A DNA stretch of 63,765 nucleotides, the filler included, from Perkinsus chesapeaki ATCC PRA-425 (lineage: Eukaryota; Protista; Perkinsozoa), in assembly GCA_013115145.1 (NCBI GenBank). It is 5 parts of 5 records of this genome, joined end to end, with 100 filler letters (N's around TTAATTAATTAA, not from the genome) between each part and the next. Parts side by side here need not be neighbours in the genome. Positions count along the whole stretch, not along the records: positions 30,410 to 35,473 come from JAAPAO010001198.1; 4 more parts are not named here. One strand, given 5' to 3'. Position 1 is the first letter of the stretch; each line of letters begins with the position of its first letter. A program made the translations under genes and the position numbers. Under the pieces are notes generated by a model. It saw only the letters and a program-made list of their open reading frames with translations. It ran no database searches and was not told the origin of the DNA. Positions 4,165 through 35,473 of the stretch are shown one piece after another.

Positions 4165-7030
4165 TCAATTGTCAGAATCGTCGATGAGCTCTGGTATCCA
4201 ATCGGAGTCTTCGACCTCAGTAAGAATCTTCGGATCCTCAGTAAACAGAATCTGACGACTCGATCGACCTGTGTTTCTCCCGCTGTCACATACGTGTTCG
4301 CAGCACTCTGTGACGCGGCTCACCTCCCCAGGACCCTGCTTAATCTCTCCAGTGAAAATAGGCACCTAGTGCACAGTATAACAGCTACCTTTCACCAGCA
4401 CCGAGATGGATACTCTATCGAGAAGAATGGTGATGTTTCTGACACCTCTAGCTGCATACAATCTCGATTTATTATAGTTCCAAAGCCTCACCATAGCCAA
4501 GCATACCTATCAGTAGTTAACCACCAAATGGAACGCATTATCCTACCGGTTTCGTTCCGAGGTCGATGGTGATGCGTTGATCACCGTCGGCCTGGAAGAG
4601 CGCCAGCCACGAATGTAGATCATCTTGGGTTAAATAGGGCTCTCGAACCAAATTCATAAGCATCGCTCCGCTAGACTTCTGACAGTCGAATCAAGTTTTT
4701 GTCGAGCCCCAGCTTGAAGGTGATCCCCGAGGTAAAGGAGAGTGATTACAGTTGAATGACATGTGGGTGTGCGGCCCCCAACGACTCGCACCGAACCATC
4801 ACCAAAAGACGATCTGAGATGCCCGCCGCCAACCCTAGGGTACCCCTCAATCACACAGCACTCTGGAGTCCCATTCTAGGCGGAGATCGGTCACTGGACA
4901 TCGGGGCAACCTCTACAGCTCACTGGAAATGTTCATTGAGCTGTCATTGACATCGAAGGCTCTTCCTTGCATTGGACTATATCGTACTCATTATCAAAGA
5001 GAGACTTTGACGGTTTTCATGATGAGAGTGAAATGTTAAGTATATTTCGACGGGAATCTTCTCTCCCCAAACATTATACCTTTACGTCTTCATCTCCCTA
5101 TCTTTGATCGAAACGCAGCCGTGCGAGGCACCTACCCCTTCTCCTATGACTTCAACTGCCTTCAATGTCGATGACACACTTCCACTACCAATCACAACTC
5201 GCCGCCCTTTACTATCAAACAGCTCAATGCCGTTCAAACCTGAGCGTCTTCGGGCGGAAACTTCCTGTTCATAATTTTACCAACAAGATTCTCATCTCCC
5301 CAAGTGGAATGTATAACGATCTCCATCACTCTCCCCTGCGGCAGCACCGGCACCGTCACCGACTACATTCGAGAGATTACCGACTAACAGATGTCTATCG
5401 TACCGTGTCTGCCGGAGGGCCGATGCCGGGCTGCCTCCGAGCCGTTACAAGCCCGTCGAGGAACTCCGAAGGCGAGATCCCGCGAAGAAGGGAGCCGCTT
5501 CCCCCCCGAGGACTAATGGAACCCGAGTAAAGTCTCGACCAATAATCTCTGACGAACCTGTCGGTCACGGAACTCATAGGAGGCAAAACGTCAGCAGCAG
5601 AAATAGGCCGTTTGGAAAATATATCATCTCTGGGGCGCGTGACGCTGCTCTCTGATGACTTCAGTGCCTATAGCGCATAAACGTAATTTCGTGGCGCGCG
5701 TGATGACCTCGAAAGTCTTTCGTGACAGACTCGCGTTGAGAGTGAGCATCTTCGTGTCGACCGACTCCCGAACCTGAGAGTCATCGGCCTAAGTTTCAAT
5801 TGCGAAAATCCTTACCGTGTTCAAGGAGGTGTCTTTTTCGGTCGTGCCATGACCTGGAGAATTATCAAGAAGGATGGTCTGAACAGAGAATACCCAACTG
5901 GAAGGATCTCGGTGTTACGGTGGTTCGGTGTACGGGAGCACATACACACGCTACAGCGGGGCCGTACTAGCTGAATACAGTATATATTGAATAAACGTAT
6001 ACTAACGTTTGTTGAAATGGTACGGTAATATTAAACGTCCTCTATTATATCAGTATCGGATATACTGGATATAGTTCACATGCTTTCTGGAGGTGTAACA
6101 AACTGATAGGTTACGGGAGATAAGGTATTCACGAGCGAAGTCGACCGAGGCTACCTCATCACCGCCAATGGCTGTGTCCTGCTCAACAGCCGTTGGCAAC
6201 GATACTCTCTCAGAAGTGGTATCGATAACCTTCCGGAGAGATGAGACGGATGCCGCAAATGTTACGATACTTCCTTCAAAATTGCCTTCTGTTCACCACT
6301 AAGCCGAAGTATCGATTCACCAACTGGTTCTGGAAGTCCTTCACTGAGAATCTAGACAAGTGGCCGATGTTGCCATAATCATGCTGAGCCGTGGCGCGCT
6401 TGAAGGAACAAAAAAGCTTCCCCGAACAAATTGACGTTTCACCAAGAGCATATTCAATACGAAAACTGTCCAAAGAATTCCTTTAGGCTGGGAACAGATT
6501 GGGATACTTCAAGTACTCACGGAGAGATAGGTCTAGTAGAAGGATGTCTCCGTGAGGCCGGATTATTGAAACTACGGAACCACTTGAGAACTAGTAAATT
6601 TGGATGATCTATATTTCACACACAAATGCTATCTTCAAATGAAGAAGTAAAACTACACCTTCGTTTGACAGAGATTTCCTCAACTCTGACAGTTCCTCCG
6701 AGGACGCTCTTGCCGCGAACTTCAACAAACTGTCGCTCTCCTTGGAATCCCTGAAGTCACCGGGTATCTCACGCGCCCCGGGATGGTAATGCTACTCCGA
6801 AGAGGAAGAGCACTGTTCAAAATCATCATCCGAGTAGAACTCGTATGCTTCGATGTCGTTCGCCAACTTATTAGGTGGATGGAGGGAGAGGCTGGGGACG
6901 GTACTTTAATGAAGGCAGATGGCAAAAGGTAGTAGCAGCTCACACTAAACCATCATCAGTTTTGAGTCTGACGGTTTCCATGCCCCAAGTAGGGCGATCC
7001 TCTGCTGCAGCTAGGATAACCGGAGCAAAC
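4165..7030 (-). CDS. KATNIP/KIAA0556-like (DUF4457) basal-body protein, many short exons; 5' end approximate
   Basis: Spliced C-terminus VLPQGRVMEIVIHSTWGDENLVG|LNGIELFDSKGRR...NLVREPYLTQDDLHSWLALF...RGVRNITILLD...PIFTGEIKQGPGE...ILFTEDPKIL resembles the KATNIP repeat (STWGD..YVGLNGIE, TQDDMHVWLAPF, RGVKDI, ILFT). Upstream exons chain in frame through GT-AG introns such as 6751-6795. Confidence 0.8.
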
Positions 7031-7232
7031 TCATCTGAGCCGAAAGGACAGAATAAGAAAGCCGAAGAGAAATGAAAATGTCAATTGATAGCTCAGAATT
7101 CGAATCGTAATATTAGATTGAAATAGTGAATTCGCAATTTGAAATCGCGACGATGATTAAATGACTTACCTAAAGCTACCTGATACATCGAGCCCCATTC
7201 ATTAGATGCCTCTACAGAGATAAGCGGAAATA

Positions 7233-7560
7233 ATGTTAGCAAAGAGAAGCATTTCTATTCTCCCTAAACTTTATGGAAGCCCAGTTACCCCAGATGTTCG
7301 AGTTCTGGAGATATATGAACCAATACTTCATAACAGCGACAGTATATCCCAGGATGGACACTACTGTGTAAAAAACTCCGAGTCTGGCCAGAAATACGCA
7401 ACAAGTCTCCAACGATAATCAGGAAACTGGTATCTGTTCAACGATTCGATTTTCAATTATATCTCGCTAAAGGCGCAGATGAATGGCAAGAATCCTGACA
7501 ATGAAAAACTCCCACGTGTTTACCACATTTTCCCCTTCTTCCGGCAAAATATGGCATTTA
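7233..7560 (+). pseudogene. Possible decayed fragment of a ubiquitin-specific protease C-terminus (His box)
   Basis: The reading frame gives ILHNSDSISQDGHYCVKNSESG...*SGNWYLFNDS...RVYHIFPFFRQ, resembling H-S-G...GHY...WxxFND...AYxLFY, but it has an in-frame TAA and no room for an N-terminus. Confidence 0.3.
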
Positions 7561-8039
7561 TTACGCCTTTAAGGCAAACATTAATATTGGACCGTTTCAT
7601 ACAGCATCATCATCATCCACTTACACTCATTTTCTTGTGGTGGTATTTCCCGTCGGTTCCTCCCTCTTCTCCTCTCCTTCGGTGGATTGGAGTATCGTCG
7701 CCCTCCTTGAGAATAAAGGTCAAATCCTTTCTCCTTCTCAATGACCTCTTGCGATTCTAATGCCAACCTGACAGTAGGATGGAATCGCTCCAGGCATCTC
7801 ACCGGAAGTATCGGTTTTATAAACTAACTGAGGACTTGTAGGCTTTAATGGGGTAGTACGAAGAAGTCCGAGCAGTCCTCTATTGAATGAAAGTGGCACG
7901 ACTTGGAATAGAGCGATATAATTTTAATTTACTATAAATTATACCGTGTAAGATCACGGTAGCCGATCACGTGCACTCGTGACAACCAAGATGGACCATA
8001 AATTTTTGTCAAGTGCGATATAGCCTGCGTGAGAATATA

Positions 8040-8560
8040 CTTCTCTCGGTCAGACTGAAGACTCTCCAGTATGATCAGTCTACAGTGTAGAGCAACAACT
8101 CACAATATAATTCGGGTCAGTTTGACATATCTACATTTGCTTGTTCCCAATAATAGATTAAATGATACTTTCATCGCAATCCGTCCTCACGAGGACGAAT
8201 CCTTGCTTCGCTCCGCTCACCTCCGAGTAATTTTCCTTTTTTCTCTAACCAACCTAAGATACCTCTCCCGTGCGTCAGGATCATATCTCAACTGATACCT
8301 TCGAGAGTACGATCCTTCATTTCCAGCAGCTGTGCTGCGCATTTGCCATCAAATCGAAAACTATATAAAAAGTGTCTCATACGAAATGATACGTCGGAAG
8401 AGTTGTGCGCCTGCTAGGCATGGCATGCTCTCATATCCTTTCGGGCTCGAGAATCTGGTCTTTCTTGCGTTCGACGTTGCGGCCACTGTAGACAGGTCAC
8501 ATCGGGGCCGTATCAAGTACATGACGCAAATCTTCACATTAATCATCGTCGTGAAAAGGT
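8040..8560 (-). CDS. Possible small multi-exon gene, unknown product
   Basis: Several short open segments are bounded by cag/tag acceptors and gtatc/gtgag donors. The frame chain is not unique and I recognise no homology. Confidence 0.25.
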
Positions 8561-8904
8561 CCATACAGTGAAGCCAGGAAAAATCTCGCTCGCCCAAAAA
8601 ATCGAATTGGGTTACGAAACGGTCATGATATTATAAAATTTATTTTTAACTGTTACCATCATGCTGTCTTCCAAGTTTCCTGTTCTAAGCCGTAAAATTA
8701 AAAAAGTTATACCAAAAAAACGAATTCGCATAACGGTTTGGTTCGCACTGTAGGTTTACAGTGAAGTGAAAATCTACACTGTGGACACGCTACAGCCAGT
8801 AAAGAATCTCCAAGATACGAGGAGGCGGAGAATACGGCGATTTAACTTTGATGCTCGGTGAGAATAACCGTCTCATGTTAGGGCACCACCCATGGACATA
8901 TTAT

Positions 8905-11900
8905 ATAACACGGGCAACTTGTTCGGAGCCAGTTCCTTCATACGCGGGTCCATCAGCAGAATGTGTAATGACTTCGTGGCCGTTGCCTAATGTAGATAAA
9001 ATAAGTTCATCTACTCGGAGGAGACTCCTTCTGAGGTCAGTTTGATCCACATGAACTCAACAACACTGTACCATAATACCATAACAACATCATCAAGCTC
9101 ATGTATCCCTTCTCAGTGCTTGCATAGCCTTAGCTACCTCCATCGCTGCAGCTTCCTGCTCCAATGCCTGTCGCCAAAGATCCCTCTCATACACCTTCGC
9201 CAATGCAAAGCAATCCTGAAACAGCATGCAGACACGAACTACAATTCTGCCTACTTTTAAATTGGTAACAGGGCCTTCAGGAACAGACAGGTCCGTCGAA
9301 ATGCGGACCGCTCGACTTCGTCTCTTTTTGCGAAGGTCATCGCTTCCTTTCTCCCCAGCACCGCCCCGGTTACCCTGAAAGCTCAACATCGGCAAGAAGG
9401 ATCCAGGAAATAAAATTATTCCCATTTCAAATTCAAATACATTCCACCTACGTGATGTGCTTAGTAATCGGGGGGAAAAAGCAAAGCAAGGCAGCCACTC
9501 GAAAGTATGGTAACAGCAGATTGAGTGGGCGTGGGAAGACATATATCCCCGACCTGTCTCATTGATCATTAATAATACAAGCCTACTGGTAAATCCAAAG
9601 TCCCCGTAGATTCTCGACGATTCTCCTCGGCTTCTTTCGGTCTAGCTATGAGCGATGAACCGTACAACCTAAAACTCATACCGCTCCTCTCTCATCAAAG
9701 TAAGAATCCTACTCGTGATTCTGGCGGATGAATTCCATAAGACTGGCCGCGGTGAAATCGAGACTTTCATTACCGTCACCGTGCATGCCACTGTCAAAAT
9801 CGGTCTGCAGATGGAAATATGGAAATATAGCCTATGCGAGGTCCTACAGTAGGAACTAATAAAAGGGAAGCTGACTGCCCGTCAAGATGAAACAGCCGAG
9901 CAAATTGGACCTGACAAAGGCACAGGTTCGAACCCGCCACTTTGCGTTTATTCAACAGTCCTATTTTGATAATTCACGACGAAGCCTATCCGTCCCTATT
10001 TCTCGGCGCGCAAGAAATGTTCCCTGACCTACCCAATCTCTGAGATGCTTTGCACAATCGTTCATAGAATCTATTAATTTCTTAGCTGCAATCGCCTTGT
10101 TCCTCATTCGTCTGCAGAACTCCGTGGCCAACAGACCATACCGGAGCACCTACCAACAACATCAGCAAAAGGGGATCTAGCCGTCTCCCCTACAGGATTC
10201 ATGACAGCGGCATCCACCCGAGCCTTCAGCTGAGCCAGGCCGACATTAGCCATCATCTCCTCAGCTTCTAGCCCGAGCAGTTCACGGCTCCCTCGCCTTG
10301 GTGCTCCACCAGGCATGAGTATGGATGATCGATGGCTGCCGACACCGCCGCCCCGCATAACTGAGCCTCGTCTTCCTCCCTGCTGCTGTGGCACTGCTAG
10401 AGTATTCGAAGGTTGCTGAAATGTCCAGACTGAGGATCGAACCCACAACCGTTCGATTGCCTACCTGGTTAACTCTGGACATCCGCCTCGCTCCGCTGCC
10501 ATCAGGTGGCTGAAGTGTCGGAGCCGAAGGGCTAATCCCAACCATCACAGATTTTCGGAGTGTTGGCGAACTCGCGACATGCCTCACAGATTTCCTCATA
10601 GATTTCCGGCCCTTCCTCCCTCGCCGACCCTTTTCTGAGACCACGACTCCAATACAATACACCATTATATATACCATATTCACTGTAGGTGTTAGCCGTT
10701 CCCACTACCCCAGAAATGGCAGCATCGTTTATCTATTTACTCATTTTTAAGATAAGTCCCTCTGGATTGAATTATTGCGCGTATCGTACGTACAGATATT
10801 ATGATAACCACCTTAATCATCTCCATTCCATCGGCACGCACTTTACGTCGTTCTTAATAATGTTGATAATGACGAAGCTGAGCTCCGTAACAGGCCTTAT
10901 CACAGCCTACTATATATCATTTTCAGAGGAATTCTGGGGAAAATTTTGCGGCTTCAAATTCCACGAGCACGGTAGATAGCACATTTCACGCGCGAAGCTC
11001 CCAGCTTCAACACTCGTGACGAGTTACCTTTCTCCCCAGGCCGTCCTTTGACTCGGCTCCCTCGTGTTCGAGCCTTCTGGTTAGCTCTCTCCCAAGACAC
11101 TTGCCATTCTTCTATCAAACCTTGTGGTGCTTTCTTCACTGATATCTCCGCGGACTGAAAGTAGAATTTACAATCAGGTAAATCGGCCGCCCGTTAGGCT
11201 CACCGAATGGTTCTTGTAGAGGTTCATAAGGTAATGATGCTCCACTTTAATGAATCCAGGTATCCACTTCGTTCTCAGCGTTTCTTGAAGGTCGCTGTGG
11301 AACTGTCTCCAGAGCCTCTGCAGCCTCCTTGTGTTCCACAATAGCCGCTTGACAGCAAGGCTAAACGAATGCGAAATAAAAATCCTCCAAGTGGGAGTTC
11401 CCACCTTAGTTGACCAGCTTGCGACGCCGATACCATCAACCTCCGGATTAGCTCTGCCGCACTTGCCTTTCGCCGCTTCTTCCACAGCGGTCTCAGAAAC
11501 CTCACACTGGAATCGAGTAAGATACTCATTTGGGAGGATGGATTCAAGTATCACCATGCATTGACCGCAAGTGTCCATCGTTTTCGTGAAAGCTGGAATC
11601 GTCTGGTTGTCGACTTGAACCGCAAGGCGTAGATTCCGATCACGAAAACTCGCCTACGGAGTATCATTCAAGCGGCCTAGTGAAGATACCTTACCATAGC
11701 CTCACATCGATTGGAACGCTAGCTCTCAGAATTGAACGCTGGACGTTGACAACAGCCGCCGCCGAAAGTATCTAGGTCGAATGGTGAATATTTCCCCAAT
11801 CAAGCATACCTACTCTCAGCCATTGCTTTTGCCACAATGTGAGTTGTCGGACAGACATATCCGTTTTAGGTGCAAGGCGACCTGACATAACTCGATTGGG

Positions 11901-12945
11901 CATACGGTCGCGAGTTGCGATGAAAGATGATTTTCGGGTGATATCCCGGGCTTTCACATGAAAGATGGGACCCTTGATATACACGGACGCCTATATATCA
12001 TTGGAGGCATCGGGTAGCCCGGCTACAGATAACTAAACAGTTAGAAGGCACAGGTTCAAGGATATCTATCGGGCACTAGGGGAACACATTAACATCCCTA
12101 TGTCAGGGTGCTCGAGTGTAGCCTGTATTATCATAGGCGGAGGATGATGTTACACAAGTAGTAACCGTTGTGGGCAGGATCGGGTCAGTATTTTTTCGTT
12201 ACCCAAATGAGAATTCGGTCAGAGATCAGTCGGCCCAGCACTGTAGTGACCACAGTGTAGTTTATGCGTACCTCACGAACCAGTAACCGGCTGTTGTTTC
12301 TGATGTTCCGGGCGAAGGCAGCATAGGGGCTACCCGAAAACCGAAACATATAGAAAATGGAAGCATCTGAGCATTTATTGAGTATTATAAATCTTTAGAA
12401 GGTGCCAAATTTAACTATGAAGCGAAAAGCGGTCGACTGCGATAGCTGTACCGAGTCGCTCACTTCGGTATTGTTATCCCGTGAACGTGCGCACCATAGT
12501 TAAATTTGGCACCTATATTGCGCCCGCTCCAGCACTGCCTCAAACGCCTCCACAACTCCAACCGCGGCGGCATATTGGCGATGGCGCTGAAGATGAAGGA
12601 GCAGGCGGCGGAGCGGAGCCATCTAGTAAAGTGCCGCCAAGACGGTAGTAGGTCACTTGGCGATACCCTTCGGTGTCAGTACTATTCGTTATTCGACACG
12701 ACTCGGTGCACGATGCCTCTTCGATGGCAGTGTCCAAGAACGCCGATAGCATCCAATGCAGGGCATATGTACACAAGAAAGGCCGATGGGAGGCTCAGGT
12801 CCATTCAAAACCACCATCCTCGTCCTTTCGGGTTTCCCAAATTGGGCCCTCGAAGCAGGGCCTCCGAGCTCTACCTGCTCAGACTCGGCACACAACTTCA
12901 CCGCTTCAGCACATACGCTATTTGCTGAAGCAGCGTTATCTTTGA
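8905..12945 (-). CDS. Multi-exon hypothetical protein with IQ-like/basic helical segments; boundaries approximate
   Basis: Successive splice-bounded open segments include MAPLRRLLLHLQRHRQYAAAVGVVEAFEAVLERAQYR, RRLQRLWRQFHSDLQETLRTKWIPGFIKVEHHYLMNLY, Arg/Ser-rich low-complexity stretches and YERDLWRQALEQEAAAMEVAKAMQ. Confidence 0.5.
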
Positions 12946-30409: not shown

Positions 30410-30771
30410 GTACGAGAAATCGTACGCCAGCACTGCGAGATGATGGCGAGTACTCTACACGAGCTCGCGCATCACCTCCACCACTTGCGCTACCACACCT
30501 CACGCACTGTGTATAACCCGAAACAAACTATAGTTTCATGAACACAAACAACTTGAAAGGCTCAGAAACACACGGAACCGAGCGTAACACGAAGGGGACG
30601 GCAAGGCGCCTTGCCTAGGACAGACATGCGAGGCTCCGGGCCGAGGCCCTCGGCAACTGACGGTGGCACCGATGACCACACAAAATCGCCTACTCAGATA
30701 GTAGCGGGCTACAAGTTCAGCTCCGCAAGCTGGCAACATCAAGCTGCAGACAGGCTAGAGAGTAGATATCA

Positions 30772-31916
30772 CTAGTCTTTTATCATGAACCACGAAGCTA
30801 ACTTGGCTTTATCTTCGGCACTGTCATGAAGGTAATCTAAGACAGCTGTGGAGCGCCACCTGCCTGCGCGCATGAAGGCCGGAGAGTCCGCCGGCCAAGA
30901 CCTATGCAGCAATTGTGCGCCGGTGCGTCTATGGGTGTGAGTTCCGTAGTCGGAAACCGCTTCCCAGCCAATGACCGGGCCGAGCCTGACGCGTACCAAA
31001 TCCAGAAAGGCATCGTACTGCAGAGGGAAAACCCTCCCTTCCGGTGGAGCGTCGGGGGGCCGACAGTCTAGAAGAGCATGAAGGGGACAGAGCTCACAAG
31101 GGTCATTGGCCAAATCTTGGATATCAAAGGAACTCACAGCCTCGGACACACAGGCAATATACGCCGACTGCCCAATTCTGCATTGGTCCGTCTTCGAACG
31201 CCGAATACTAATAGTGAGCAAGGGCGAAGGACAGACGCTAGGTTTAGTGGTAAAACATAGGTCGCCCCAGCGCAAATTTAGAAGCTCGTCAGCTCTCAAA
31301 AGGCCAAAAATCCCGACCAACATTGCACGCGACGCGATGTCCACCCTAGGCGGAGCACATCTGAAAACACGCAACAGATCAGCTCTGCAGACAGGGCGCA
31401 TTTGCCTTGTTGGTGTACCACCGACCATCTTCTGCGAAGCTTTCAGGATGTGAGAGACTTGAAAATCTTCGCTAGGGGTTAACCAAAAACCCGCGGACTT
31501 ATTACGCGATCGAAGCGCCGACACAAAAGTCTTGATAGAGTTGTACGCATAGTTGCAAGAAGACAGACTCCAAACAAATACGGCTAGGTCTTGAACCCGC
31601 AGAGGGAACGCTTTTCCTCCAATAACTTCTTCAAAGAACCGTACCGTGGAGTCGTATAAGGTATTGGTGTTCGAAGCCAAGCCAGAATGCGCAAAGGAGT
31701 CGGCCATGGCACAGGCTTCGACCTTGGTAAATTGGCTCATGAACTTACGAACATCATCGCGCTTGGCTTTTGTCGATGGCCGCGACAAGGCAGCGTGTCC
31801 CTTAACCTCGGGAGGCGCCAAGAGGGGTAGACTGTACTGAGTACCGCACCGAGTCTTGCTTGGTTGGAAGGGATAAACTGGGATTGGCGAGTTCGAACGC
31901 AACACAGCAAGAGGAC
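30772..31916 (-). CDS. Tyrosine recombinase of the retroelement
   Basis: Catalytic set R (FGLLRADEL), K (RRSKTDQ), HxxR (THTHRRTG), W (GRW), Y (VLDYL), plus CPLHAL and an N-terminal LASNTNTLY SAM-like helix. The frame is open from an AG at 31917-31918; the first in-frame ATG is at ORF-track codon 56. Confidence 0.95.
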
Positions 31917-31982
31917 CTGAAACCGGAAATTACTTGCTCACAAGAAGACTAGAAGGAGAAGTAACTGAAGCACTATTGCCAA

Positions 31983-34141
31983 TTAAGATTGCTCAACAAA
32001 GATGTCATCCAACGCTATGGGGACCCTACGCCAAGCTTTGGGGACCGATTCACAATCACCGCGCGATATGCCGTCGGCAAGCCAATTCTCCTCGGAAGGA
32101 AGGTGGGATAGCACAAGACGGTCGTTGAAGAAACCGAACCAACTAGCGATCCCTCTGAGTACGGCTGCTAGGGCTGGTTTGGGAGAGTAAAGCTTTTTTA
32201 GCAAGCCGACGACACCCAGGTTGTCGCAGAATAACACCACATAGCCCACATCTGCTGAAAGGCCCTGGGAGGTACCGACGGAAGATGTCAGTGAGGCCGC
32301 AAGATGCAGAGTGATGGTAGCCGCTAAGAGCTCAAGTAGAGCTATGTCCCGATGGGTAGGGACCGGCCGCTTTGGAGCACCAGCCAAATGGGAAGCCCAT
32401 CGCCCTAACGTCACAGAGGTAGCTTCCAATTGGAACCAAAGTCCGCCGGAACCGCATGATACCCAACCAGCCATAAAATCAGTCGATGCATCCGAAGCCG
32501 CAATCAAAGATGCTGGGCCCACGAAAGCCGGGTTCAATAGAGAGCAGGGGGCCGGCTTCTCTGCGACACCAAGCCAAAAAAGGACAGAGCCAAAAGAAGC
32601 TGACGACTTACTCAACTTCATAGAACGCAGCTTCTTCTTTTCGAAGATGCTCAACAACGCGTATAGGGGTTGGAGAAAACCCTTGAGGTGCCGCATGCCC
32701 TGACAGGCGAAGACCAGTTTACCGATCACTTTACTCAGAGGGGCCGGTGTCACGCGCCCTTCATCAACAAAAGCGAGCAAAATGTCTCGGATGGATCTGA
32801 AGATGTCAGGATGCACCCTTACCGAAGCCTCGCCCGTGTGCGAAATAACTGCTTCAAACCCGATGAACTTTACCGAGCGGACAGAAAAGAGGGACTTCTC
32901 CCAATTCAGCTCAAAGTTGAGGCACCGCCAAATCAAAAGGGTCATAGCCGAACCCACTGCATAAAGCGCCTCGGGGAAAGCGAGAAGGCCATCATCCACA
33001 TAAATCAGGGAGAGGAACTTCTCATGGCCAAAGGTACATCTCAAGCAGGCCGCCACTATCCTACACAACGAAGCGCTTGCGCGACACCAGTGGAAAGGAG
33101 ACGTTCCCGCTCCGAAGGGCAGGGCGAGACTCTCGTAGACGTCCTGGCCCAGGCGTACTGAAACTCGCGGTCTGTCCACTTCTCTTACGAATAAATGACG
33201 ATACGCCGAGGCTATATCGTACTTTAAGAACAAGTAGTCGTAAGAGTCTAACCTCTTACGAGGAAAAACCGAACGACAGTGACAGACCGAAGGAGCCCGG
33301 CTCCCGGCGAACAAGTCCGCTAAACCAGACCGAATGTCACAACTGCGAGGCAGAGAGCACGTTTCGCTCAATGAGCACTGAGCGTTTAGCCCAGACCCCG
33401 AATGGTCCTCAATGAGTCGGTACTCACCAGAAGATTTCGGGATTAGGGCCATACGGGCATAAAGGCGATGAGAAGCTTGGCTAGCTTGTGCAGCTGACAA
33501 CCGCCTCATTCGACCTAGAGCGACCTCCCGATCTAGTATGACTTTGCAGATCTCTGGCCTCAGCTCTACCGAAGCAAAGTTCTGGTAGGTGCGCTTCAAG
33601 TTGAAGACTTCCATCGCCTTATCCAGGTCTTTCTTAGACTTAGCCGGCGGGAAGGTTCCCGTGGGGTGGATTGGGGGATCAACCCCTAAATTAAGGCCAA
33701 CGTCAACCTCAGAGAACAAGTGCACATCAGGATCATTAGTCACCTTCGCTAAGGCACTGCCCAAGGGCGCTCTGATGGGGCTACCGCAAGATGCCGAGCG
33801 ATCCGAACAATCAAGAACCTTGCACAGCCTAGCGACCGCAGACGCGGCGGCGGAGCTGAAAGTAGTCTCGAGAGCCTTTGCCTGTGAACCAGAGGGCGCA
33901 CCTTTCAAACCACGGAACCACTCCAAAGTCGCTATGGCTGAAGCCTCCTCGAACAGGATCGAAGCGACCACAGGTAGCTCGGGAGCGCAGCACGTAGCTG
34001 CAAAGTCTGATGGTTTCTTGGCCGACAGCCCAGTACCGTCTTGAAACCCCGTGTCAGTCAACTGTTTACCAACCGCGGCGTGTCCTGCCTTTCGCAGCTG
34101 AGCAACGTGCTCCCGAGCCGGCCCATCCTCGATGCAGGCAT
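31983..34141 (-). CDS. Reverse transcriptase-RNase H (pol) of the retroelement
   Basis: RT motifs YRLIED, KYDIASAYRH, LPFGAGTSPF and IYVDDGLL; RNase H motifs ASDAS, IALLELLA, FCDN and ENWLADGISR. No methyltransferase domain follows. The first in-frame ATG is at codon 150 of the ORF-track frame. Confidence 0.95.
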
Positions 34142-34294
34142 CTGAGGACCATGACTAAATAACTCAACACATGAGACACGCTCACGAAACAGAGTTCCGA
34201 CACACACAGTGCCACAACGCAATCACTATTAGCGATTCACTAAGACGTCACACAGACATCACCCTAACGCAGCGACGAAACTAGCCGGACTTAC
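34142..34294 (-). other. Predicted 153-nt spliceosomal intron fusing gag to pol in frame
   Basis: Donor GCTG|GTAAGT at 34294 and acceptor GTCCTCAG|AT at 34142. Removal gives ...ERSGA-D-ACIEDGPAREH... continuous into pol. The intron holds the gag stop plus four more in-frame stops. Confidence 0.6.
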
Positions 34295-35390
34295 CAGCAC
34301 CAGAACGCTCGTCTTTCTCCTGAGCCTTCGGCGGAGCACCCGAAGAACCTTTAGAGCCCCTATACTCGCTCCGCGCAGGCTGCACCTCATCTTTGCCGGG
34401 AGCTCCTGCATGCCGAAAACGGCAGTGGGAGCCAAAACGGCACCGCCCCTCCTTCTGGAAAGCGTAACAAACTTGCCGAGACTTCTGCCTGTCCGAGTTG
34501 TTACCAGGCTTAGAAGGTACTGACCGAGAGCGATTGAAGGAAAACTCGGCCAACAAAGTCGGATAGGCGTCGTTCACAAAGCACTTGCTCACAGAGAGAT
34601 CGGTGGACGCCGCAACCAAAGAGGCGATCGATCTACGGTACTTGTCGTCATATAAAACAAGCTCGTCCACCGACAGAGAACCACTTAGCGAGAGTAACCT
34701 CAATAGGTATGACACGACGTCGAGGGCGGAGAGGACTTCAGGATCGACAATAGCTGCGACCAACAAAGCATAACGGAGACCGCTGTGAGCAAGTTCGCTG
34801 ATAGACCCGATCCTCTTACCTTTGCTGGAGCTGGAAAATGGGTTCTCGCCCTTCTCGGCCTTGGAAACGCTGAAGTTGAAAAGCTTCTCGTCGGCCAAGT
34901 CGAGAGAGGAGTCCTTTGGTACCAGAGACTTGAAGGATAGGTAGTGACCGTTCTCTTTGTTCGCTATTTGGGCGACTATCTCATTGGATATACCATGGAG
35001 AGCCGACGGAGGCAAAACGGTCTTATAGCTAGCCGCGACAGCCGCGATGAGCTGGCTGACATCAGCAGACGAACCGCCTTGCTTGAACTGAGAGTCAACA
35101 GCGACTTTGCGCCGCTTTTTAACGAAGGCGGCCACATCTTCAGCTATACCCGAGAAACAAGCACCAGCAGCGACGGACAGGCCTTCCGACGCTTTATCGA
35201 AAAAGGCCGATGATAAATTACCAATGAGGCTCGAAGTGACCAGACCGTGACGGGTTAAAGCGTCGATGATCTCCTTCTCAATAGCGGGAGACGGAGATAC
35301 CGACTGCACCAAAGCACGGACCTCGTCACTCACCGGGATCACTGAAGCACCAGATGCGCTAGCGGCTGGCGGAGTCTCGTCGTTAGCCAT
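34281..35390 (-). CDS. Gag-like protein with C-terminal CCCH zinc finger
   Basis: ATG at 35390 (MANDETPP) follows a pyrimidine tract. CYAFQKEGRCRFGSHCRFRH is C-x8-C-x5-C-x3-H. The ORF is first in a RT/YR element. Confidence 0.85.
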   Translation of the reverse strand: MANDETPPAASASGASVIPVSDEVRALVQSVSPSPAIEKEIIDALTRHGLVTSSLIGNLSSAFFDKASEGLSVAAGACFSGIAEDVAAFVKKRRKVAVDSQFKQGGSSADVSQLIAAVAASYKTVLPPSALHGISNEIVAQIANKENGHYLSFKSLVPKDSSLDLADEKLFNFSVSKAEKGENPFSSSSKGKRIGSISELAHSGLRYALLVAAIVDPEVLSALDVVSYLLRLLSLSGSLSVDELVLYDDKYRRSIASLVAASTDLSVSKCFVNDAYPTLLAEFSFNRSRSVPSKPGNNSDRQKSRQVCYAFQKEGRCRFGSHCRFRHAGAPGKDEVQPARSEYRGSKGSSGAPPKAQEKDERSGAGKSG

Positions 35391-35473
35391 TGTAAAATGA
35401 AAAAAAAATGGATGCCACAACTTAAGCCAAAATACCTAACCATTACTAATGACAAACCAAGGAATGTACAGTC

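Follow-up and report, generated by a model that had tools for sequence, protein, structure and literature searches.

A probable intron holding the gag stop codon in Ngaro-type tyrosine-recombinase retrotransposons of Perkinsus

The closest described parallel to the element studied here is Ogre, a plant Ty3/gypsy retrotransposon which, according to passages in two articles that cite Steinbauerova 2008, splices between its open reading frames (ORFs) (PMC3735527) and carries functional introns (PMC12786077); the title of Neumann 2003, as listed in PMC1142308, calls it "partially spliced". For copia, BARE and EVADE (Ty1/copia), passages in PMC3735527 and PMC5580714 state that splicing sets the ratio of Gag to Pol products. 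The present work concerns a retrotransposon on contig JAAPAO010001198.1 of Perkinsus chesapeaki, an alveolate clam parasite. The whole contig, 5064 nucleotides (nt) long, occupies positions 30410-35473 of the DNA analysed (63,765 nt joined from five parts, called the window below). To judge from gene order and domains, it holds a full-length internal copy of a Ngaro-type tyrosine-recombinase retrotransposon (order DIRS), which has no long terminal repeats (LTRs). Comparison with relatives makes it probable that a conserved spliceosomal intron holds the gag stop codon of this element and that removal of the intron makes Gag-Pol.

Copia, BARE and EVADE work in the opposite direction: their spliced mRNA encodes Gag only and their unspliced RNA Gag-Pol, whereas the reverse is proposed for the Perkinsus element. 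The nearer likeness is to Ogre of pea and Medicago, where an intron also lies between ORFs and splicing, not recoding, links the upstream and downstream ORFs; for the Perkinsus element, we infer this link from the sequence. Steinbauerova et al. 2008 reportedly found that splicing of Ogre reconstitutes the gag-pro/RT (reverse transcriptase) frame. The two systems also differ. Ogre is a plant LTR element with a protease and a DDE integrase, its intron lies after the protease, and its splicing is experimentally shown, whereas the Perkinsus element is LTR-less and belongs to an alveolate, its candidate intron directly follows gag and holds the gag stop, a second acceptor precedes the recombinase, and its splicing is predicted. 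To our knowledge, a Gag:Pol ratio set by the spliceosome in this manner has so far been documented for Ogre alone, and we know of little that explains how the downstream ORFs of tyrosine-recombinase retrotransposons (DIRS, Ngaro, PAT, VIPER) are expressed.

The initial annotation of this DNA had presented the strategy as unusual, which was overstated given the Ogre precedent and a GenBank model that already contains the exact intron. What appears to be new is that an Ogre-like strategy occurs in a retroelement order and a host lineage unrelated to those of Ogre, and that a whole family conserves it. If this is true, the host spliceosome sets the Gag:Pol ratio throughout an entire radiation of Perkinsus elements, a convergent solution reached by an unrelated retroelement order in a distant eukaryote and a natural case of an intron that needs to escape removal from the replicating RNA. 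It would also provide a simple explanation for the long "C3H1-type domain-containing" hypothetical proteins found in the automatic annotation of Perkinsus genomes. Genome-editing methods have been published for P. marinus (PMC8062965).

All genes of the element are on the minus strand, on which gag and pol were verified to share one frame and to be separated by five in-frame stops, counting the gag TAG (coordinates are presented in Table 1). A GTAAGT donor stands four codons ahead of this TAG, and the last four codons of gag ORF1 (K-S-G-stop) fall within the candidate intron. Removal of the 153-nt spacer between this donor and a phase-matched acceptor unites the two frames in an uninterrupted fusion, in which the split codon G+AT encodes Asp and the predicted junction reads ..RSGA-D-ACIEDGPAR... 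The spacer has stops in all three frames. The donor, the acceptor and the fusion had all been described in the initial annotation and were recovered as described. Exactly this intron is used by GenBank model FOL47_000903 (P0001, 1084 amino acids (aa)), which equals the predicted spliced product, is described as a hypothetical C3H1-domain protein, and is the only gene called on the contig.

The junction was compared with those of seven relatives, whose pol identity to the window element ranges from 26 to 66%. Their DNA came from P. olseni and P. chesapeaki, and their exon structures were derived from their proteins. One of them (L003) has no readable junction, and P. marinus locus L011 was left out of the comparison owing to an assembly gap in gag. 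With slashes marking predicted splice sites, the donor reads G/GTAAGTC in the window element (153-nt spacer), in L001 of P. olseni (66% pol identity, 134 nt) and in L002 (47%, 166 nt), G/GTAAGA (GGTAAGA) in L008 (48%, 176 nt), G/GTAAAG in L010 (30%, 270 nt) and G/GTACGT in L012 (26%, 311 nt), all in phase 1. In L009 (26%, 697 nt), it reads AA/GTGAGA, overlaps the gag TGA and is in phase 2. In each element with a readable junction, a GT donor stands 0-7 codons ahead of the gag stop, and excision of the GT..AG spacer restores the frame. The donor block, the 8-mer GGTAAGTC, is identical in the window element, L001 and L002, and is the sole conserved block in gag tails that are otherwise unalignable. 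An equivalent YCAG/ acceptor is present in L001, L002, L008, L009, L010 and L012, and the pol frame opens 3-7 codons ahead of the acceptor in five of the six elements measured. Between the splice signals, the intron cannot be aligned with that of L001 except at its two ends.

The spacer lengths, 134-697 nt, cover all three classes modulo 3 among the seven elements with a readable junction, and gag and pol therefore lie in different genomic frames in several of them. Stops occur in every frame of the spacer in the window element, L001 and L002, the three elements checked in all frames. Given the stops in all three frames and the spacer lengths in every class modulo 3, translational recoding, whether by simple frameshift or by readthrough, is excluded as the source of Gag-Pol as far as these sequences go. 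This agrees with the initial annotation, which had considered readthrough implausible and a frameshift unnecessary; no overlap of the gag and pol ORFs is present. Moreover, neither an intron-less copy nor a continuous gag-pol ORF was found among the DNA contigs and relatives examined, and every relative has a spacer. The possibility raised in the initial annotation, that this copy is simply mutated while others keep a continuous ORF, is refuted by the relatives: by this comparison, the gag-pol intron is a family feature and not damage in one copy.

Further evidence comes from the start of pol. As the initial annotation had noted for the window element, no in-frame ATG follows the acceptor for 175 codons, and the corresponding figures are 177 codons in L001 and 193 and 138 codons in two further elements. 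In comparison with L001, the stretch from the acceptor to the first Met presents a ratio of nonsynonymous to synonymous differences (pN/pS) of 0.39, with 63, 52 and 119 differences at the first, second and third codon positions, and it contains blocks conserved in all relatives. The ATG-less stretch of pol is under purifying selection. An mRNA for pol beginning at the acceptor would offer no start codon from which to translate this conserved stretch, and cis-splicing to gag is therefore the simplest route for its expression. Cis-introns are frequent in Perkinsus, with lengths of 39-1622 bp (PMC3101222). The type of donor also suits the host: in a small sample of neighbouring host genes, GTAAGT (8:2) and GTAAGA (5:1) occur more often on the sense than on the antisense strand.

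Additional copies were found in sequence reads. A second sample of the same organism contains a nearly identical copy, with 0-1 differences in each contig across more than 2.8 kb, and, at greater depth, a sister copy diverged by about 9%. In the latter, uncompensated indels are confined to the intron (net -11 nt, giving about 142 nt) or to other non-coding spacers, and none occurs across about 4.4 kb of coding sequence. These copies suggest that the element has at least two subfamilies and has been recently active or conserved. The initial annotation had expected the splice signals to be conserved and the intron interior to diverge faster than its flanks. The first part stood, and the second is borne out by the unalignable interior and the concentration of indels, but not by an excess of substitutions, which is not clear in the copy diverged by about 9%.

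Under the proposed mechanism, gag alone would have a start codon, and unspliced RNA would be translated into Gag and would also be the template for reverse transcription. Every genomic copy would keep the intron because the template is the unspliced RNA. In a fraction of the transcripts, gag codon 365 would be joined to pol via the split Asp codon, which would yield the 1084-aa Gag-Pol, and the efficiency of splicing, rather than frameshifting or readthrough, would set the Gag:Gag-Pol ratio. We infer the splicing itself, its partial nature, the choice of the CAG at 34143-34142, and the use of unspliced RNA as the template. For the scheme of the initial annotation, in which intron retention gives Gag and splicing gives Gag-Pol, the comparison strongly favours the conserved intron, whereas partial splicing is still a proposal.

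Several observations weigh against this interpretation. Two small runs guessed to be RNA for P. chesapeaki contained nothing of the element, and database protein fragments spanning the junction (the query being the corresponding part of GenBank P0001) numbered none; neither outcome is evidence of absence. The other sequencing runs that contain the element are DNA-type. The GenBank model is an automatic prediction and is not independent support for splicing, because the same pipeline draws implausible 46-51-nt introns with weak donors in L003 and L007. Short model introns of this sort in degraded relatives (L003 601-646 and 1322-1372, L007 1323-1370 and 1467-1625, L001 3792-3852) have the non-consensus donors GTCCAA, GTAGTG, GTCGTC and GTCGAG, and look like patches placed by the predictor over frameshifts, such as a duplicated 10-mer near L003 50-70. 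GTRAG pentamers occur 13 times in the ORFs of the element, and since they are this common, a single copy alone is weak evidence for the donor. An out-of-frame AG, reported in the initial annotation and verified here, lies 13 nt upstream of the in-frame acceptor, and the copy diverged by about 9% has a substitution density in the intron that is not clearly above that of its exons, only the indels being different.

The alternative that survives best, though we consider it unlikely, is that the spacer is an untranslated intergenic region and that pol is translated alone, through non-AUG initiation, termination-reinitiation, or trans-splicing of a spliced leader at the CAG acceptor. Perkinsus does trans-splice a spliced leader onto mRNAs at AG acceptors (PMC3101222, PMC9399869), the distant relatives L009 and L011 have a recombinase with its own ATG that is annotated as a separate gene, and the failure to see a spliced cis-product in the runs guessed to be RNA or in the protein fragments is what such a region would give. 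However, in four lineages pol has no in-frame ATG for 138-193 codons despite purifying selection, and an mRNA produced by trans-splicing or translated by reinitiation would therefore have to use a non-AUG start at precisely the acceptor. This explanation also leaves unaccounted for the conservation of a strong U1-type donor just before the gag stop and the constant phase match between donor and acceptor.

It is improbable, to a clearly greater degree, that the intron is real but that another acceptor is mainly used, e.g., the one in TTATTTAG, 13 nt upstream, which would give a Gag with an alternative tail and not Gag-Pol. This AG follows a T-rich tract and would be reached first by a scanning spliceosome, and in L001, too, AGs precede the in-frame acceptor by 17-20 nt. 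Yet the relatives conserve the last CAG ahead of the pol frame, but not the position of the upstream AG; use of the latter would leave pol with no route of expression; and the upstream AGs lie a few nt past the branch-point-like TTAAT, TTATT or CTAAT, where, by general splicing rules, they would usually be unusable.

That the copy is decayed, its stops being mutations and the GT..AG fit a coincidence exploited by a gene predictor, is hardly credible: predictors do bridge defects with invented introns, as in the L003 and L007 models, but all three ORFs are intact here, the second sample holds the copy with almost no differences, and all relatives down to 26% identity have a spacer in the same place with matching splice signals; the lengths of these spacers differ across every class modulo 3, and a continuous ORF is seen in no relative.

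Table 1. Positions of the features of the Perkinsus element in the window, with the equivalent second acceptors of relatives; slashes mark predicted splice sites.
Feature	Position	Strand	Remarks
5' terminal region, part of "A" repeat, high-copy	35399-35473	minus	From read depth; ends near gag ATG
gag-like ORF1, as encoded by unspliced RNA	34281-35390	minus	369 aa + TAG; ATG at 35390, TAG at 34283-34281
Gag CCCH zinc finger, C-x8-C-x5-C-x3-H	34410-34469	minus	Pfam zf-CCCH_4, E 1.2e-5, 25.4 bits (cutoff 24.6)
Predicted splice donor G/GTAAGT, phase 1	34289-34295	minus	34295 is the last exon base
Candidate intron, 153 nt	34142-34294	minus	Starts at 34294; contains gag TAG and four further in-frame stops
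Rival out-of-frame AG, TTATTTAG	34155-34156	minus	13 nt upstream of in-frame acceptor
Predicted acceptor AG, TCCTCAG/AT	34142-34143	minus	Exon 2 starts at 34141; pol frame opens 5 codons upstream
pol exon, about 718 codons + TAA	31983-34141	minus	TAA at 31985-31983; frame opens just before 34141
Reverse transcriptase domain	32853-33242	minus	Pfam RVT_1, E 1.1e-7, 32.2 bits (cutoff 29.6); YVDD at 32991-33002
RNase H-like region	32061-32498	minus	D..E..D..N-x-x-A-D invariant in 7-relative alignment
pol-recombinase spacer	31917-31982	minus	Ends in TTTCAG/ acceptor, AG at 31918-31917, phase 1 relative to ORF3
Tyrosine recombinase ORF3	30772-31916	minus	Frame open from 31929
ORF3 catalytic R	31279-31302	minus	
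ORF3 catalytic K	31183-31197	minus	
ORF3 catalytic H-x-x-R	30925-30939	minus	
ORF3 catalytic W	30850-30864	minus	
ORF3 catalytic Y	30823-30840	minus	
Second acceptor, window element	31917-31918	minus	
Second acceptor, L001	2919-2920		
Second acceptor, L005	816-817		
Second acceptor, L006	180-181		
Second acceptor, L007	2258-2259		
Second acceptor, L008	6944-6945		
Second acceptor, L010	3956-3957		
3' terminal region, part of "B" repeat, high-copy	30410-30482	minus	From read depth and joint to 35399

The assignment to the Ngaro type was not recognised in the initial annotation. Ngaro elements have the gene order gag-like ORF1, RT/RNase H ORF2 and tyrosine recombinase ORF3, and no methyltransferase (PMC3783388, PMC8547959). 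The same order, with an RNase H-like region in ORF2, is present in the window element, whose three ORFs are all intact. No match to a protease or a DDE integrase was obtained in a Pfam search of the element's proteins and those of six relatives, and no match to a Dam-like methyltransferase in P0001 or six relatives, the RT and the RNase H-like region filling pol. Absence of the methyltransferase separates Ngaro from the DIRS1 and PAT groups. The RNase H-like assignment draws on the invariant residues listed in Table 1: no Pfam match to RNase H was obtained in the window pol or in the relatives' proteins searched, and a profile search of the PDB gave no significant match, the weak ones at its top being Ty3 RT/RNase H (E 0.15-0.44). 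NCBIfam gave no match for the window pol or ORF3.

In comparison with L001, the C-terminal part of gag ORF1 presents a pN/pS of 0.38 (139 codons compared). The CCCH finger of Gag is kept in the relatives P0008, P0016 and P0028, whereas Gag of the retroviral type usually has a CCHC knuckle. Near the start of gag, a possible spliced-leader relic, ATTTTGGCTTAAG (35421-35433, minus strand), ends 27 nt upstream of the gag ATG and is identical at 12 of 13 positions to the 3' part of the dinoflagellate spliced leader. It is probably a chance match and was rejected as a relic, since the relatives lack it and other loci match the leader equally well at random positions.

Ngaro elements of Cafeteria burkhardae, fungi and zebrafish share with the Perkinsus element the gene order and the lack of methyltransferase, protease and DDE integrase, and they have A1-[ORFs]-B1A2B2 repeats and solo AB repeats (PMC8547959, PMC3783388). 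The searchable descriptions of Ngaro and DIRS elements give separate or overlapping ORFs and mention no introns, whereas the Perkinsus element has a candidate intron and a CCCH finger in Gag. In the searchable papers, introns in tyrosine-recombinase retrotransposons are not mentioned: the word "intron" is absent from PMC3783388 and PMC3266345, and in PMC8547959 it refers only to virophage genes. The termini were examined in the relatives and in the reads. L009 is a complete 6.2-kb relative (5790-11994) flanked by host genes, and has perfect split direct repeats, namely A1 at 5790-6001, which ends exactly at the gag ATG, B1 at 11341-11554, A2 at 11552-11763, and B2 at 11781-11994; none were seen in L008 and L010. 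Within the contig no terminal repeats were found, since it ends inside repeats. Its two ends, 30410-30482 and 35399-35473, have 4-8 times the depth of the body, and in reads of the source sample 35399 is linked to 30482 through 14-22 intervening letters. Such an A-to-B joint is what A2B2, or solo AB repeats, would give in an element with split direct repeats; it was at the terminal repeats that the assembly broke. Window positions 30423-30493 (element 4981-5051) are 80% identical to the 3' end of P. olseni L001.

The nearest protein clusters, about 30, are all from Perkinsus (P. marinus, P. olseni and P. chesapeaki), a sign of a diverse radiation of these elements throughout the genus. DIRS1-like elements in P. 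marinus have been listed from GenBank (PMC3266345).

ORF3 is unannotated in GenBank on this contig. The profile of the seven family ORF3s matches Cre recombinase with an E of 5e-8 and with the catalytic R, K, H-x-x-R, W and Y aligned. The R, K and H-x-x-R are invariant in the seven members, and the W and Y are present in six of them, L010 being truncated. Four of the seven match Pfam Phage_integrase PF00589 (best E 9.6e-8); the window ORF3 alone gave no Pfam match, its identity as a recombinase coming from the family profile.

Directly before ORF3, seven elements have a second Y-rich CAG/ acceptor, also missed by the initial annotation, which in every case is in phase 1, like the gag donor. 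In the window element, ORF3 has its first in-frame ATG 58 codons past this acceptor, and this ATG is not conserved; in L007 and L008, the first ATG lies 135 and 70 codons downstream, within the conserved core. A conserved second intron between pol and ORF3 was considered and rejected: the donors chosen at the end of pol by the GenBank models are weak and differ in every relative, and the model of the window element has none.

The conserved phase-1 acceptor, the lack of a conserved ORF3 ATG, and the weak and variable donors at the end of pol make it possible, as a tentative suggestion, that a single phase-1 gag donor is spliced alternatively to the acceptors at 34143-34142 and 31918-31917, which would yield Gag-Pol and Gag-recombinase from one start codon. 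Such a scheme would recall retroviral subgenomic mRNAs, which are made with one major 5' donor and several acceptors, in that one strong donor in the gag region would serve two downstream acceptors. Retroviruses, in contrast, obtain Gag-Pol via frameshift or readthrough and use splicing for env and accessory genes, and use of the second acceptor here is conjecture. Three results argue against one donor serving both acceptors. The first 57 codons past the second acceptor present a pN/pS of 0.91, i.e., no coding constraint. In L009, the gag donor is in phase 2 while the homologous acceptor-like site is in phase 1 and is followed by stops, and the phases hence do not co-vary. The recombinase gene of L009 has its own ATG, 17 nt past a possible trans-splice acceptor.

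A separate observation concerns the surroundings of both acceptors. The sense-strand motif TTGCGT(T) occurs at most about 80 nt from both of them in nearly all closer relatives: at 34216-34222 and 31896-31902 (minus strand) in the window element, 606 and 2935 in L001, 266 in L002, 4812 in L008, 823 in L005, 196 in L006, and 2243 in L007. It is tied neither to one reading frame nor to one side of the splice site, with 18 sense and 3 antisense occurrences in about 36 kb, and could be a binding site for a splicing regulator or for Gag.

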